From the IMG/VR virus record IMGVR_UViG_3300038463_000730, positions 310,001 through 374,000 of that record: 64,000 nucleotides of DNA. One strand, written 5' to 3'. How positions within the stretch are numbered: position 1 is the stretch's first letter; each line of letters begins with the position of its first letter. The notes beneath the pieces are model-generated. The model had not been told where the DNA came from. It searched no databases and saw only the letters and a program-made list of their open reading frames with translations. Positions 21,061 to 63,945 of this stretch are shown in pieces. Made by a program: the position numbers and the translations under genes.

Positions 21061-21588
21061 ATGACCTCTGCTCCAAAATCATTTCGAGATCTGTTGCCAA
21101 AACCAATAGGAATTCCGATACGCGCTAAATCGCATCCATCTCCACCTCCAATGGTGCAGGCACCGCCCGGCTATTATGAACAGAAGGCGATCCAAACTAA
21201 AGAGATGCTTCGCCTTGTTAATTCCCATCGTTGCCCATTATGCGGTGCGCAGCTCGACGGAGGAGTCTACTCCACGGTTGCCGATGTATTCTGTCGCGCC
21301 AATCCTGATGAATACTCTGCGAAGTACAAGCGCGGTACTTCGGTACCGGTCTCATCGGTACAACGAATTTACTACACCGAAACTCTATATGAAGTGGATA
21401 GTACGCATCTGTATGAAGATACATATCGAAACCTCATCTATACGGTCAACATGACAGTCAACGCCAGAGAAAGAATGAAAACGAAGAAGAAGATCGTTGA
21501 CCTGGAGTGCGCTCGAATTGTCTTGAGCAACAAACTCGACGAACCGAATCTACTCCGGAAGATCAAAGCCTACAGGCTATTCGGTTAG
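21061..21588 (+). CDS. hypothetical protein (CxxC; shared C-terminal motif)
   Basis: Plus-strand ORF filling the gap; CPLC; ends KIKAYRLFG. Confidence 0.65.
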   Translation: MTSAPKSFRDLLPKPIGIPIRAKSHPSPPPMVQAPPGYYEQKAIQTKEMLRLVNSHRCPLCGAQLDGGVYSTVADVFCRANPDEYSAKYKRGTSVPVSSVQRIYYTETLYEVDSTHLYEDTYRNLIYTVNMTVNARERMKTKKKIVDLECARIVLSNKLDEPNLLRKIKAYRLFG

Positions 21589-49134: not shown

Positions 49135-49616
49135 TTCTTTTTCGCCTTTAGCTTTTCGGCTTTCTCTTTCAATCGCTCCATTTCACGATTGGTTTGCTCG
49201 ATCTGACGCTGTCTTTCTGCTTCCTGACCTTCATTCCAAATAGCTAGATCCGATTCATACTCTTCCTGGATCTCTTTCGCGCTCATCTTGTGAACGTGAA
49301 TGACCTCAAGACAAAGGTAATCTTCAGAAAACGAAGCAGTAAAGAATACTTTCTTCGGGTCAAGCCCTTCTTTCGCAACCCGCTCGTTAATTTCGATCAA
49401 CGAGATTGACATTCGACTAGAACCAGAAGTTTCTTCCTCATCGTTCTGTTCATCGTCGTCATAGCATTCATCTTCAGCGTTACCATACCCAGGCCAGTGA
49501 TTTACTCTCTGACTAGTAGTGGCGACCGCTTCAATTCTGGATCGTTTTGCGCCAGGCTTCGGCTTCTTTGGCTCATTGTAGAAGTGACGTTCACGCAGGA
49601 GTGGTAACTTACTCAT
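49131..49616 (-). CDS. hypothetical protein
   Basis: Acidic, C-terminal coiled coil. Confidence 0.65.
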   Translation of the reverse strand: MSKLPLLRERHFYNEPKKPKPGAKRSRIEAVATTSQRVNHWPGYGNAEDECYDDDEQNDEEETSGSSRMSISLIEINERVAKEGLDPKKVFFTASFSEDYLCLEVIHVHKMSAKEIQEEYESDLAIWNEGQEAERQRQIEQTNREMERLKEKAEKLKAKKK

Positions 49617-49629
49617 ATTTCCCTATTGA

Positions 49630-49657
49630 TGGTTGGCCGAAGTGGATTCGAACCACC
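49630..49657 (-). pseudogene. 3' fragment of split tRNA-Ile (T arm + acceptor + CCA)
   Basis: GGTGG-TTCGAAT-CCACT-TCGGCCA-A-CCA; complementary to the 5' fragment at 50645-50676. Confidence 0.75.
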
Positions 49658-50137
49658 TCACACAAATGACCTCATTTTAGACAACCGAAAAAACGACTGA
49701 ATGATATCACGAAACAGATACCAATCTATTTTCGGTCGATACCCACCAACTTTATTGGACCACGGAAATATACTCAGCCTATGATCTTGAGTCGGATCAA
49801 TCTGTTTCTCGGTCTTTGAGTCTGAAAACTTGATGGTGAACTCACTTACATTCAAAAGATTTGTTACGACACTTGGCGTAGAATACTCTACATTTCCACC
49901 GCTAGTTCCAACAATAGTGGTGACATCTATATCTAGACTGTTGAAACGGATAACGTTGTAAAACGAAGTAGGCGTACCACACGACCATTCGCCTAACGGG
50001 AATCTTCCAACAAACCTCTTGCGGAACAAGAATATACTATTATCGAAACGAATATGCAACCCTTTGTTACGTTTACTCTGAATACGAGCATCTCGGATTG
50101 AACGAGATAGTTTTTTCTTAATGATTCTTGCTTTCAT
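49658..50137 (-). CDS. hypothetical protein inside the split tRNA
   Basis: 159 aa; stop codon abuts the tRNA 3' fragment; ends RLSKMRSFV. Confidence 0.6.
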   Translation of the reverse strand: MKARIIKKKLSRSIRDARIQSKRNKGLHIRFDNSIFLFRKRFVGRFPLGEWSCGTPTSFYNVIRFNSLDIDVTTIVGTSGGNVEYSTPSVVTNLLNVSEFTIKFSDSKTEKQIDPTQDHRLSIFPWSNKVGGYRPKIDWYLFRDIIQSFFRLSKMRSFV

Positions 50138-50139
50138 TG

Positions 50140-50214
50140 TGTGACGTGGTGGATTTGAACCACCGACCTTCTCTTTATCAGAGAGACTATCTTACCGGAC
50201 TGATATAACGTCAC
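50140..50214 (-). tRNA. trnI: tRNA-Ile(GAT)
   Basis: GTGACGT/ACGTCAC acceptor; TCTCT-CT-GAT-AA-AGAGA. Confidence 0.92.
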
Positions 50215-50632
50215 GTTTACCGGGCCAAGTCTTACGATTCTTGGCGCCGAAGTTTGGTGTCTGAGTATGACAGTTAGGACATAGCAATCGTAGATTGGTT
50301 CGTTCCTGATTCATATTGTCACCATCTATATGGTCAACCTGTAATGTTAACGATTTCCCGTTCCACATTGGAAGCTGACCACACTCTTCACATCTGTTTC
50401 CTCGTTCTGTAGCTAAGTATTCTCGAATACGCCATGATTTCTTGCGGCCTTTGACGAAGATTTCATCCGGTGTCTCGGCTCGACGTCCTTTATTCCAGGC
50501 TGAACGTTCACCAGTATAGAACTTGTAGTTAGGATCGAAGTTCTTTCCTGCTCCATGCATCCGCCAGAAATGTGACTTAAGACCATTGGTGGCATCACAT
50601 AGTTTACCGCAATCTGGACAGCTTACCTTCAC
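50192..50632 (-). CDS. HNH endonuclease with N-terminal C2H2 finger
   Basis: CPDC...HFWRMH; CEEC...LQVDHIDGDNMN...NLRLLCPNCH. Confidence 0.85.
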   Translation of the reverse strand: MKVSCPDCGKLCDATNGLKSHFWRMHGAGKNFDPNYKFYTGERSAWNKGRRAETPDEIFVKGRKKSWRIREYLATERGNRCEECGQLPMWNGKSLTLQVDHIDGDNMNQERTNLRLLCPNCHTQTPNFGAKNRKTWPGKRDVISVR

Positions 50633-50644
50633 GCATTAGATATA

Positions 50645-50676
50645 TCAAGCGCTCTAACCAACTGAGCTACCGGCCA
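50645..50676 (-). pseudogene. 5' fragment of split tRNA-Ile (acceptor + D arm)
   Basis: TGGCCGG-TA-GCTCAGTTGGTTAGAGC-G; broken in the anticodon arm. Confidence 0.75.
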
Positions 50677-50686
50677 TCATATTTCA

Positions 50687-50956
50687 TTATGCCATACAAC
50701 TGCAACGATCGTAACGATCACATATATCCTTTGCATCGTTAATATTGTCGAACAAAAACATATCAGCTTGATCTGCTATCCGATACGGATCAGTAAGCTT
50801 TAGATTTTTCAGGATCGTATGAGTCGTGTGATTGATGATCACATGCGCCTCAAAGCTTCCTGCCACCATTTGGACCATGTAAACATGGCGTTTCGACTCA
50901 CCATAGATCTTATCATCACCGTAACATCCGACAGGTTCCCACCGTAATCGACTCAT
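50687..50956 (-). CDS. hypothetical protein
   Basis: 89 aa coupled ORF. Confidence 0.55.
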   Translation of the reverse strand: MSRLRWEPVGCYGDDKIYGESKRHVYMVQMVAGSFEAHVIINHTTHTILKNLKLTDPYRIADQADMFLFDNINDAKDICDRYDRCSCMA

Positions 50957-51267
50957 TTCATCACCACCAGGCTTTTATTAGTCTCTCGAACGTAGTGATC
51001 TATTGCGATAGCTTTAGCTTCTTCTACAGTTTTGCAATCGCGACGTATACTAAAGCTCGTATTCGATCCTCGTGAGTCTTTTTCCTTGGATGAAGCGAAC
51101 AACGCAAAGCTCGGAGGCTCGAAATCCTTCGTATTGTTCATAATGATATACATCCAATCATCCTTCATGATGAAGGCTTCGACACCAAGTCGGTAACCAA
51201 GCAAAGCATCATTGTTCATGAATGAAGACCAGACCCAATCCTGCCTGGCAACGATGTCATTACTCAC
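50953..51267 (-). CDS. hypothetical protein
   Basis: Ends TVEEAKAIAIDHYVRETNKSLVVMK. Confidence 0.6.
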   Translation of the reverse strand: MSNDIVARQDWVWSSFMNNDALLGYRLGVEAFIMKDDWMYIIMNNTKDFEPPSFALFASSKEKDSRGSNTSFSIRRDCKTVEEAKAIAIDHYVRETNKSLVVMK

Positions 51268-51893
51268 TTTGGTGCCAGCTTTCGGAACCGGGTCATCTGT
51301 TCGTTGTAGTAAGCCTGGTAACGAACCTTGTACGGATCCCAGGTGTCCGTCTTATCGTGCTCGATGTCGCGCCATATCGCATTTGAGGAGGCGTAATTGA
51401 CTATCTTACCATGCTCGGCGATCTGAATACCGAAATCAATGATGCGCAGACAGTGAAACAGCGATTTCTTGGCAGTGTAGACGTTCCGATCTTGCACAAC
51501 CTCGAACTTCTTCTTCGCTTTCACCCAAGAGTTGGAGGCTTTTGCGGAGAAGTTCTCGCGTAGAAGCTTCTTATCCAGTTTGAACCTATAGCTTTCTTTA
51601 TTCGCAAGTACAATATGACTTGGAAGAAAAATAGACTCCAGGGCCGAGACTTGGTGATCATTAACCGCCGAAGCGAAGGTCTCCCTCTCGTAGAGCGATA
51701 TATTGAGGTTTTCAGTACCAGCTCTCTGAAGGTTCGCTTGTGGGTCACCATTTGTAACTACTATAAAATCATAATCAGATGAATATGATTGAGTCCCGTA
51801 GACCATGCTCCCGTAAGGAAAAATATTAAGAACATCACTATCCTGTAGACCCAGCGTTTGCAATACCAGTTCTTTGGTGACGTTCGTATACAT
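51264..51893 (-). CDS. Pol-beta-superfamily nucleotidyltransferase
   Basis: IFPYGSMVYG...SDYDFIVV (GS...DxD). Confidence 0.8.
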   Translation of the reverse strand: MYTNVTKELVLQTLGLQDSDVLNIFPYGSMVYGTQSYSSDYDFIVVTNGDPQANLQRAGTENLNISLYERETFASAVNDHQVSALESIFLPSHIVLANKESYRFKLDKKLLRENFSAKASNSWVKAKKKFEVVQDRNVYTAKKSLFHCLRIIDFGIQIAEHGKIVNYASSNAIWRDIEHDKTDTWDPYKVRYQAYYNEQMTRFRKLAPK

Positions 51894-52434
51894 TCCTAAT
51901 CCATTCCATGAATTCGCTGTAAGTTCGTTTTCGTTTGGCGTAATTACAATTAATACAGCATGTAACGATGTTGTCTGGACTATGGTTTTTCGAATTGTCT
52001 ACTCGGTCCAAACCATTGTATTTGAATGTTGCGTCTTTTGCCCATTCTCCAGTGTACGATTTTGACTTATGCAACTTTGCAACGTTTGCTGGTTCGACCC
52101 CGCAATAGTGACACTGTTGCTGTGACAGTTCCAAAAACAATACAAACGGACAACCATCTCGATACGCCTGTCGCCAGACCTGTGCAGCAGTAGCAATCCG
52201 TGGACTTGGATGCTTGCGAGCAAATGGGATAATGTATTTAGCGTTTTCTTTCCCAACCTCTACTCTTTTACACCCGCAGCTATCACTGTAACTTGATATT
52301 AAGTTTGTTTCATAAACCACTTTTTCAGTGCCACAGTCACATCGACATTTCCATGTGTTATGTTTCTTATTCTTCTTGCCTGCAAACTCAAGAACTGTCC
52401 AACGCCCATATTCTTTATTCCGTAAATCCTTCAC
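51838..52434 (-). CDS. HNH-type endonuclease
   Basis: GRWTV...WKCRCDCG...SCGC N-terminus; CHYC...NGLDRVDNSKNHSPDNIVTCCINCN. Confidence 0.82.
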   Translation of the reverse strand: MKDLRNKEYGRWTVLEFAGKKNKKHNTWKCRCDCGTEKVVYETNLISSYSDSCGCKRVEVGKENAKYIIPFARKHPSPRIATAAQVWRQAYRDGCPFVLFLELSQQQCHYCGVEPANVAKLHKSKSYTGEWAKDATFKYNGLDRVDNSKNHSPDNIVTCCINCNYAKRKRTYSEFMEWIRNVYERHQRTGIANAGSTG

Positions 52435-63557: not shown

Positions 63558-63599
63558 TTCTCCGTATCTTAATTTCTCGTAAACGTCTTTCCCATTTAG

Positions 63600-63674
63600 A
63601 GCCCACAGCTGGATTCAAACCAACGACTCCGCAGCACGAAGGCCGCGTACTCTGATCAACTGAGTTATGTGGGC
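63600..63674 (-). tRNA. atypical tRNA (Thr-like body; CGT/TCG ambiguous)
   Basis: GCCCACA/TGTGGGC acceptor; anticodon arm CGCGG-CCTTCGTG-CTGCG (8-nt loop); T loop TTTGAAT. Confidence 0.55.
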
Positions 63675-63692: not shown

Positions 63693-63768
63693 TGGAGCCC
63701 AGGGTTGGATTTGAACCAACGACCTTCCGATTAAAACCGGCTGCTCTAACAGACTGAGCTACCCGGGC
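63693..63768 (-). tRNA. tRNA-Lys(TTT)-like with shortened anticodon loop
   Basis: GCCCGGG/CCTGGGC acceptor, encoded CCA; anticodon arm GCCGG-TTTTAA-TCGGA (6-nt loop). Confidence 0.65.
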
Positions 63769-63867
63769 CAATAATGAAACTATGAATTGAAGGTCAACGA
63801 TCGACCTCCGCGTGAAGTCTGCACCTGGGTGCATCGTACCGATCGTAAGTAGGAAACCGTTAACCAG

Positions 63868-63945
63868 TGGGGAGTGCTGCTTTCGAGACAGCGACCACTC
63901 CGGGTCGAAACCTTTCGTTGCTCTACCATTCTGAGCTAACTCCCC
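63868..63945 (-). ncRNA. tRNA-like RNA without a canonical anticodon arm
   Basis: Perfect GGGGAGT/ACTCCCC acceptor and GCTC/GAGC D arm; anticodon region ACGAAAGGTTTCGACCCG; T loop CTCGAAA. Confidence 0.55.

Follow-up and report, generated by a model that had tools for sequence, protein, structure and literature searches.

In a 435-kb peat jumbo phage, an apparently mobile gene pair, consisting of a predicted free-standing HNH homing endonuclease gene and a tRNA-Ile gene, has landed inside a small tRNA-shaped gene and cut it in two. We consider it most likely, with a probability of about 0.55, that the interrupted gene belongs to a so far undescribed family of phage tRNA look-alikes that have no anticodon arm. 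The window analysed here is a stretch of 64,000 nt, positions 310,001 to 374,000 of IMG/VR record IMGVR_UViG_3300038463_000730, and all features described lie on its minus strand.

An earlier note, made from the sequence alone, had described a tRNA-Ile split by an HNH cassette, and this observation was confirmed. The 5′ piece, at 50676-50650, consists of the acceptor strand TGGCCGG, then TA and a D arm, GCTC-AGTTGGTTA-GAGC, followed by G; with the subsequent linker, GC-TTGAT-A, the piece spans 50676-50643. The 3′ piece, at 49657-49630, consists of a T arm (GGTGG-TTCGAAT-CCACT), the acceptor strand TCGGCCA, the discriminator A and an encoded CCA. The acceptor strands pair 7/7, including two G-U pairs. 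Between the pieces lie an HNH ORF (50632-50192), an intact tRNA-Ile(GAT) (50214-50139) that overlaps the HNH 3′ end by 23 nt, and a 159-aa ORF (ORF159; 50137-49658) whose TGA stop directly abuts the T stem. The Ile-type character of the pieces was confirmed by a canonical tRNA-Ile(GAU) of another peat organism, which matches the D arm 19/19 and the T arm plus acceptor 3′ strand 21/22. However, there is no anticodon stem on either side of the insert.

To determine whether such an arrangement could arise by chance, we searched the 434.7-kb genome for each half. A loose D-arm motif was no more frequent than in shuffled sequence (128 against about 107), and we therefore used a strict 5′-half signature, which occurs 8 times, all on the tRNA strand, against 0.25 expected; only 2 of these lie outside called tRNAs. 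Orphan T-arm motifs number 12, against 0-2 in shuffles. Although chance 7/7 complements within 4 kb are common (0-15 per orphan), only one of the 12 orphan T arms, the one described here, has a distant 7/7 partner followed by a D arm, and pairing in the fixed register has P = 4e-4. The locus is not an assembly artefact, since four independent assemblies, the JGI contig, two Logan runs and one ENA assembly, are 100% identical over 2.4 kb. The whole unit is bracketed by a 14-nt direct repeat. The upstream copy (ATAATGAAATATGA; 50690-50677) abuts the first base of the 5′ piece, and the downstream copy (ATAGGGAAATATGA; 49626-49613) contains the ATG of the next gene, a 161-aa ORF (ORF161; 49616-49131). 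ATANNGAAATATGA occurs only at these two places in the genome, whereas GAAATATGA occurs 6 times against 3 expected. Flanking direct repeats are not a family-wide feature of the armless elements described below: only the window (9 nt exact) and, weakly, one other member (7 nt; in phage G002, see below) have them.

We next examined the contents of the insert, which measures 985 bp (50642-49658) if the insertion was clean. The HNH gene encodes 146 aa from a GTG start, with an N-terminal CxxC...HxxxxH zinc finger and an HNH core (Pfam PF01844, E = 4e-5, above the cut-off; phrog_10822, E = 1e-25); the D-H...N...H/CxxC core is visible in an alignment of five homologues. The intact tRNA-Ile(GAU) was called by ARAGORN and scored 65.1 bits against the Rfam tRNA model. 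It has no encoded CCA, an AT-rich D stem (TATC/GATA) and the lowest GC content (0.46) of the genome's 24 tRNAs, and its first 23 nt encode the HNH C-terminus and stop codon. ORF159 is an ORFan that is probably coding, since its annotated frame scores best of three, and has a low GC3 (0.39). It had no Pfam hit, no meaningful PHROG hit and no relatives in the phage and protein collections searched; its Atlas score was below 0.8, and a single-sequence AF2 model had a pLDDT of only 31. The cassette is compositionally foreign: its GC content is 0.42 against 0.48 for the genome, and codon scores are 0.10 for the HNH gene and 0.08 for ORF159, against 0.27 +/- 0.07 for core genes. By contrast, the flanking ORF161 (0.28) and ORF104 (0.24) look native. 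The earlier note also proposed a GATATAT promoter motif. These letters are present, but no sigma-70-like site lies on that strand and TTGATATATCTAA is unique in the window, so calling it a promoter is unsupported.

To determine whether the tRNA-Ile was assembled for this site, we searched for relatives of the HNH protein. There were 434 homologues at E<=1e-8, of which we examined the genomic context of a subset. In 11 of 11 family members examined, including the window, the HNH 3′ end abuts or overlaps a tRNA gene. The four closest homologues, in phage contigs designated L254-L257, are 52-63% identical to the HNH and all precede a tRNA-Ile(GAU); the partner is tRNA-Leu(UAG) in contigs L258, L259 and L261 and tRNA-Ser(GCU) in L260, and phages GodonK and mistaenkt also have the arrangement. 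We conclude that HNH followed by tRNA is a conserved module, and that the tRNA-Ile is the usual travelling partner of the endonuclease rather than a made-to-order replacement. The linked tRNA-Ile of the window has a compensatorily changed D stem, TATC/GATA instead of GCTC/GAGC, which fits the idea of an immune allele but does not prove it. The HNH gene is absent from two relatives of the phage, G001 and G002, although these are distant and without synteny at this locus.

We reasoned that a contiguous relative might reveal the original form of the split gene. The distantly related jumbo phage G002 carries a contiguous 62-nt element with the same plan (72.9 bits): acceptor strand GAAGGGA, TA, D arm ACTC-AGTTGGTTA-GAGT, linker TT-TTGAT-C, T arm GGGGG-TTCGATT-CCCTC, acceptor strand TCCCTTC and ACCA. 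In the window, TTGAT lies in the same register of the 8-nt linker, and the pieces of 34 and 28 nt also add up to 62 nt. The differences between the two in the acceptor stem and in D-stem pair 10-25 are compensatory. Searched separately, the 5′ piece matches positions 1-36 of a model of armless elements built in this work (R1; 24.8 bits, E = 6e-9), and the 3′ piece matches positions 26-63 (18.1 bits, E = 1.5e-6). Scanning each piece alone against all of Rfam gave nothing at E<=1, although this is uninformative because E-values are scaled over 4,227 families. G002 is 41% identical to this phage in one anchor protein and the flanks of its element show no detectable synteny with the window, so the two elements cannot be taken as orthologous on present evidence.

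About 20 such anticodon-armless elements occur in phage tRNA clusters, where members lie 3-5 nt from tRNAs. They comprise a 7-bp acceptor stem, TA, a D arm, an 8-13-nt linker, a T arm and the acceptor 3′ strand, 58-64 nt in all, sometimes with an encoded CCA. Two disjoint alignments, A1 and A2, have 93.3% and 95.6% paired cells, respectively; in both, all 7 acceptor pairs covary, and 0/500 shuffles reach the observed values. Consistent with this, an unbiased tally gave 7/9 viral candidates with at least 6/7 acceptor pairs, against 0/9 at a control register. Rfam has no dedicated family and sees the elements only as generic tRNA at 30-46 bits, ARAGORN does not call them, and literature searches found no description of gene-encoded armless tRNA-likes in phage.

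A comparison with related phages lacking the insert had been set out beforehand as a test, but no close relative with an uninterrupted site was found. Near and distant BLAST searches of the region against phage records returned only HNH-core hits, and exact scans of IMG/VR for either piece, or for the D arm of the intact tRNA-Ile, gave 0 matches. Anchor proteins gave only relatives at 39-43% identity, and ORF159 and ORF161 matched only themselves in a word search of 5.8 billion proteins. Contigs of four peat runs showed no empty-site variant, since the apparent joints were canonical tRNA-Ile genes of other organisms, and no RNA data were found.

The data described above are most consistent with a horizontally acquired cassette of about 1 kb inserted cleanly at the linker/T-stem boundary of an Ile-type armless tRNA-like gene, which was most likely never a decoding tRNA, in which case nothing needed replacing. 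In this view, the HNH family would recognise DNA at the 5′ side of tRNA genes and normally live immediately upstream of one; here, the Ile-specific member would have cut an Ile-like sequence and been copied in together with its tRNA-Ile and a passenger ORF, destroying the site and so giving self-immunity. The overlap of the HNH stop codon with the tRNA means that tRNA 5′ processing would clip the HNH mRNA, which should keep endonuclease levels low, as proposed for T4 segB. The anatomy of the locus, the conserved HNH-then-tRNA module, the foreign composition of the cassette, and the existence and covariation of the armless family are established by our analysis, whereas the cleavage activity and target specificity of the HNH, the order of events, the immunity, and any expression or function of the armless RNAs are inferences. 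For site-specific cleavage with resistance of the own locus, the only hints are indirect: the insertion within an Ile-type sequence and the recoded D stem of the linked tRNA. The boundaries of the insert are likewise inferred, from the comparison with G002. A short TTG is found at both junctions, and the 9 bases before the T stem (TTTGTGTGA) resemble the linker TTGTGTC of other armless family members, which makes the exact insertion point ambiguous; they can also be read as remnants of a canonical ...GTG-AGGT... region. Moreover, in all other members of the HNH family the gene sits 5′ of a tRNA, not inside one.

The interpretation in the earlier note, that the cassette destroyed a canonical tRNA-Ile and supplies a recoded, immune substitute, was only partly supported: a mobile HNH cassette carrying a tRNA-Ile(GAU) does interrupt an Ile-type tRNA-shaped gene, and the HNH belongs to a lineage tightly tied to tRNA genes, but a replacement role remains no more than possible. 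In that model, the HNH cut a canonical tRNA-Ile(GAU), resection removed the anticodon arm and variable loop (about 22 nt), and the HNH, a cleavage-resistant tRNA-Ile allele and a passenger ORF were copied in. Deletions at double-strand breaks are common in illegitimate repair, the pieces are Ile-type, the genome has no other tRNA-Ile(GAU), the HNH subclade is specifically linked to this isotype, and GTGAGGT before the T stem resembles the canonical ...GTG AGGTC. In addition, 4 of 5 HNH-linked tRNA-Ile genes have compensatory AT-rich D stems, against about 1-2 of 17 other phage tRNA-Ile(GAU) genes, although this rests on few and partly non-independent genes, and the L254 gene keeps GCTC/GAGC. 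However, G26 is followed after only two bases by TTGATA, with no 5-nt anticodon-stem strand; nothing complementary to CTTGA precedes the T arm; and both the odd register and the summed piece length are those of the contiguous G002 element.

Other explanations appear unlikely. The split might be functional at the RNA level, with the roughly 1.06-kb transcript folding so that the acceptor strands, D arm and T arm form a tRNA-like top half and the coding insert is looped out where the anticodon arm would be, as in tmRNA or a natural tRNA scaffold; after excision of the internal tRNA-Ile, the halves might stay paired and protect or regulate the HNH and ORF159 mRNAs. Both the MFE and the centroid fold of the contiguous 1,055-nt RNA pair the 5′ and 3′ ends and form the T-arm hairpin, the insert sits exactly where a tRNA tolerates an extension, both pieces are intact down to the encoded CCA, and the sequence is identical in samples from several studies. 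Nevertheless, folding predictions over 1 kb are unreliable, the D arm is not formed in the MFE structure, a 7-bp stem is weak in trans, and no comparable split member was seen elsewhere. We found no evidence for rejoining of the halves after transcription, the alternative raised in the earlier note: no group I intron was detected, and ARAGORN called no tmRNA and did not join the pieces even with introns of up to 1,300 nt allowed, offering only a 96-nt tRNA-Lys with a 262-nt intron that starts inside ORF159, with 6/7 acceptor pairs and no proper D arm, which we judged spurious. Integrase-mediated insertion into a tRNA gene is also not supported, since there is no integrase among the cassette ORFs, and one 5′ and one 3′ piece are present rather than duplicated 3′ ends. 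It is least likely that the pieces are unrelated debris from two tRNA genes or chance matches, even though the genome is rich in orphan T-arm motifs and has several unconventional tRNA-like genes, given the 7/7 pairing at the exact canonical register next to a perfect D arm, the absence of another such pair in the genome, the match of piece lengths and linker register to a contiguous homologue, and the bracketing repeat.

A more speculative possibility, which we regard as tentative, is that the armless tRNA-like RNAs are a functional class of phage-encoded small RNAs, transcribed and processed within tRNA clusters, that present an acceptor end and a tRNA elbow without a cleavable anticodon loop. 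They might act as decoys or sponges for tRNA-targeting host defences, or as substrates for acceptor-end enzymes. Because they keep isotype-like D and T arms, they would also serve as landing sites for tRNA-specific HNH-then-tRNA homing modules, and the window would be the first example of such a hit. Homing endonucleases in phage tRNA clusters are known to move tRNA genes and, according to a 2026 study, help phages escape tRNA-cleaving immunity (PMC13096335). To this, the locus adds an HNH lineage with a fixed, overlapping HNH-then-tRNA architecture and subclade-specific partner tRNAs, which makes endonuclease plus tRNA a definable mobile unit with testable target rules; a case in which such a unit has split a tRNA-shaped gene, which gives a candidate recognition sequence; and a family of about 60-nt armless tRNA look-alikes that standard tRNA finders miss. 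If expressed, these would be a new kind of phage small RNA at the interface with the translation and defence machinery.

The closest known systems are T4 SegB and other free-standing homing endonucleases in phage tRNA clusters, such as T5 F-TflI/II/IV, in which an endonuclease gene is likewise embedded among tRNA genes. SegB recognises the T-psi-C-coding motif GGTTCRANTCC and is inherited together with neighbouring tRNA genes, and control of its expression through tRNA processing has been proposed (PMC2330249); the segB-tRNA association is widespread, and SegB can amplify anti-defence tRNA genes (PMC13096335). However, SegB is a GIY-YIG enzyme, whereas the protein described here is an HNH with an N-terminal zinc finger, its family shows a fixed head-to-tail architecture with overlapping ends and a partner isotype specific to each subclade, and the cassette in the window lies inside a tRNA-shaped gene rather than between genes. 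Gene splitting by a free-standing HNH endonuclease is reported for mobE in nrdA of Aeromonas phage Aeh1 (Gibb and Edgell 2007, cited in PMC2330249), where insertion within a gene likewise leaves two separately encoded pieces. In that case a protein gene is split and its two products reassemble, whereas here a 62-nt structured-RNA gene is split and the cassette also carries a tRNA and an ORFan. As in tRNA genes with endonuclease-carrying group I introns and in archaeal split tRNAs, a tRNA-type gene is interrupted by about 1 kb that encodes an endonuclease, and the halves have complementary acceptor strands. However, Rfam gave no Intron_gpI match at E<=10 over 49300-51000, about 98% of the insert is ORF or tRNA, the insertion is not in an anticodon loop, there is no anticodon stem from which a bulge-helix-bulge motif could form, and no complementary leader sequences lie next to the break. 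Lastly, the tRNA-like domain of tmRNA and other tRNA mimics, such as YrlA Y RNAs and viral tRNA-like structures, also have an acceptor stem and T arm but no anticodon arm, the missing arm being replaced in tmRNA by a long insert. Rfam gave no tmRNA match at the locus, and the armless elements differ from these RNAs in keeping a fully canonical Ile-type D arm, in being only 58-64 nt long and in lying in phage tRNA clusters.

The 434,688-bp IMG/VR viral record, of which the window covers bases 310001-374000, was cut from a 503-kb JGI contig and is seen in peat metagenomes of five studies. ARAGORN called 24 tRNAs in this genome, all on the minus strand, including a suppressor tRNA(CUA) and three genes with abnormal anticodon loops. 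These three genes (in the stretch covering window 63599-63674 and 63693-63768 (-), and genome 374601-374678 and 374731-374804, just beyond the window) have 6-nt anticodon loops, as in GCCCGGG...GCCGG-UUUUAA-UCGGA, are labelled 'tRNA-???' with 2-nt anticodons by ARAGORN, and sit next to the suppressor tRNA(CUA). The relative G001 has a similar pair (locus L003), and such genes also occur in three contigs that carry homologues of the HNH gene described below (L255, L257 and L260). Close by, at window 63862-63945 (-), is an uncalled 84-nt tRNA-like gene with a 7/7 acceptor (GGGGAGT/ACTCCCC), a canonical D arm (GCTC-AGAATGGTA-GAGC), an aberrant middle part and a T-like arm (GCTGT-CTCGAAA-GCAGC).

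The split locus lies on the minus strand. A copy of a direct repeat, ATAATGAAATATGA, at 50690-50677, is followed by the 5′ piece TGGCCGG TA GCTC AGTTGGTTA GAGC G at 50676-50650, which continues C TTGAT A to 50643. Next come the HNH ORF (50632-50192), a tRNA-Ile(GAT) (50214-50139) and ORF159 (50137-49658), and then the 3′ piece GGTGG TTCGAAT CCACT TCGGCCA A CCA at 49657-49630. A second copy of the repeat, ATAGGGAAATATGA, at 49626-49613, holds the ATG of the next gene. The acceptor strands of the two pieces pair 7/7. The observation made in the earlier note, that two pieces with complementary acceptor strands and Ile-type D and T arms flank an HNH gene and an intact tRNA-Ile, holds. However, the promoter that the earlier note placed at a GATATAT motif in the insert has no support.

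To determine whether this arrangement could arise by chance, we compared the signatures of each piece with expectation. The strict 5′-half signature occurs 8 times, against 0.25 expected, and the fixed-register pairing has P = 4e-4. There are 12 orphan T-arm motifs outside called tRNAs genome-wide, all on the tRNA strand, against 0-2 in shuffles; examples are at genome 21202-21218, 351516-351532 (window 41516), 372690-372706 (window 62690) and 420707-420723. The motif at 21202 looks like an acceptor plus T-arm minihelix (AGCGCGC...GCGCGCT), and the motif at 420707 lies beside an HNH paralogue (38% identity) and tRNA-Thr. Among the orphan T arms, only that of the split locus has a distant partner that carries a D arm. 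We conclude that the arrangement is well beyond chance. Four independent assemblies are identical over the region. The pieces are Ile-type in sequence: a canonical tRNA-Ile(GAU) of another peat organism matches the D arm 19/19 and the T arm plus acceptor 21/22, with a normal A-CACGG-CTGATAA-CCGTG-AGGTC between them.

The HNH is a bona fide HNH protein with an N-terminal zinc finger. Its four closest homologues (in phage contigs L254-L257; 52-63% identity, from four different samples) are each followed within 26 nt, or overlapped by 10 nt, by a tRNA-Ile(GAU), and these pairs sit at the 5′ edge of large tRNA clusters. Four more distant homologues overlap a tRNA-Leu(UAG) or a tRNA-Ser(GCU), and the isolated phages GodonK and mistaenkt show the same arrangement, such that 11 of 11 members have the HNH-then-tRNA architecture. 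In L255 and L257, the HNH stop codon is the U8-A9-R10 of the tRNA. Phage contigs carrying the closest HNH-then-tRNA-Ile modules also encode tRNAs with anticodon UUA (L254 4869-4944; L256 998-1069), which ARAGORN labels 'tRNA-Stop', i.e. ochre-suppressor-like. The genome under study holds at least 13 HNH genes, and its three isolated tRNA genes (Arg-TCT, Ile-GAT and Thr-TGT) each have an HNH within about 400 nt. Directly upstream of the split locus are a second HNH/endonuclease VII-like gene (window 51838-52434 (-); 198 aa; phrog_374, E 4e-19) and a Pol-beta-type nucleotidyltransferase (window 51264-51893 (-); 209 aa).

HNH and ORF159 share low GC3 (0.40 and 0.39) and low codon scores (0.10 and 0.08, against 0.27 +/- 0.07 for core genes), whereas the flanking genes look native. 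The HNH is absent from the relatives G001 and G002. ORF159 is an ORFan without a usable model. The linked tRNA-Ile has the lowest GC of the genome's tRNAs and a compensatorily altered D stem. Three of the four comparator modules show the same feature, but only about 1-2 of 17 other phage tRNA-Ile(GAU) genes do; this is suggestive only, since the sample is small and partly non-independent.

We reasoned that a canonical tRNA cut by a clean insertion should retain both strands of the anticodon stem. None is present here: TTGATA comes two bases after the D stem, and nothing complementary precedes the T arm. In contrast, G002, a 366-kb phage sharing a 41%-identical nucleotidyltransferase, carries a contiguous 62-nt element at locus L047:1744-1805, GAAGGGA TA ACTC AGTTGGTTA GAGT TT-TTGAT-C GGGGG TTCGATT CCCTC TCCCTTC ACCA, that lacks an anticodon arm. 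The GAGC GC-TTGAT-A of the window has the same register, the two pieces (34 + 28 nt) make 62 nt, and the differences from G002 in the acceptor stem and in pair 10-25 are compensatory. Consistent with this, each window piece, searched separately, matches the model of the armless elements, with 24.8 bits for the 5′ piece and 18.1 bits for the 3′ piece.

A motif scan found further contiguous armless members in IMG/VR, metagenomes and a few genomes. Two disjoint alignments of these elements (A1 and A2) give 93% and 96% pairing, with all seven acceptor pairs covarying. Given that members had been chosen by acceptor pairing, we also made an unbiased tally, in which 7/9 viral and 10/26 metagenomic candidates pair at least 6/7 at the canonical register, against none at a control register. 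Members lie 3-5 nt from tRNAs in phage clusters. ARAGORN ignores them, Rfam scores them only as generic tRNA at 30-46 bits, and we found no description of them in the searchable literature. Many linkers in A1 and A2 read U-U-NNN-(U)-C, like an anticodon loop without its stem: the NNN is GAU in G002 and in the 5′ piece of the window, GUG in members L025, L032, L033, L034 and L134, and CAU in members L028 and L204, of which L028 abuts a tRNA(CAU) gene. Even smaller tRNA-like units occur in viral contigs (L020, with four tandem copies; L018/L031; L023/L045), and consist of a 7-bp acceptor stem, AATGGTTAGAGC and a 3-bp T arm, with no D stem and no anticodon arm. A large and distinct chromosomal class is found in bacterial genomes (loci L062-L133), mostly Bacteroidota (Chitinophagaceae, Flavobacterium and Pedobacter), with the form ...GGGA TA GCTC AGTGGTTA GAGC AACAGA... 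GCAGG TTCGAAT CCTGC TCC.... This class has a D arm, a short linker and a T arm, but only a 3-5-bp acceptor, and Rfam scores it as weak tRNA (loci L149, L163 and L118).

The data described above favour a reading in which the cassette was cleanly inserted into an armless tRNA-like gene, to which we assign a probability of about 0.55. However, other readings are also possible. The sequence before the T stem, TTTGTGTGA, resembles the TTGTGTC linker of other armless members, but it can also be read as a remnant of ...GTG-AGGT...; the exact junction is therefore not settled by sequence, and a canonical ancestry is not excluded. Moreover, no empty-site relative was found in any of our searches, and G002 is not syntenic with the window. 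The proposal of the earlier note, that a canonical tRNA-Ile was destroyed by the cassette and replaced by the tRNA-Ile that the cassette carries, hence remains a tentative alternative, and we regard that interpretation as only partly supported. A split gene that is functional as RNA is unlikely; this idea rests only on end-pairing in a 1-kb fold. It is more unlikely still that the two pieces are unrelated debris.

The 14-nt direct repeat (window 50677-50690 and 49613-49626 (-); 12/14 identical, 9 nt exact) is unique in the genome, brackets the whole 1,064-bp unit, and duplicates the start region of the downstream gene, including the start codon of the 161-aa ORF (ORF161). The G002 element has a weaker 7-nt equivalent (AAAAATG). 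This suggests that the tRNA-like gene, with or without the cassette, was itself inserted between ORF89 and ORF161.

The closest known system is T4 SegB, a GIY-YIG enzyme that recognises GGTTCRANTCC in tRNA genes and spreads with neighbouring tRNA genes, and whose expression has been proposed to be limited by tRNA processing (PMC2330249). SegB homologues are widely associated with tRNAs and can amplify anti-defence tRNA genes (PMC13096335). The locus described here differs from SegB in the enzyme family, in the fixed overlapping architecture with subclade-specific partner tRNAs, in the position inside a tRNA-shaped gene, and in the nature of that gene.
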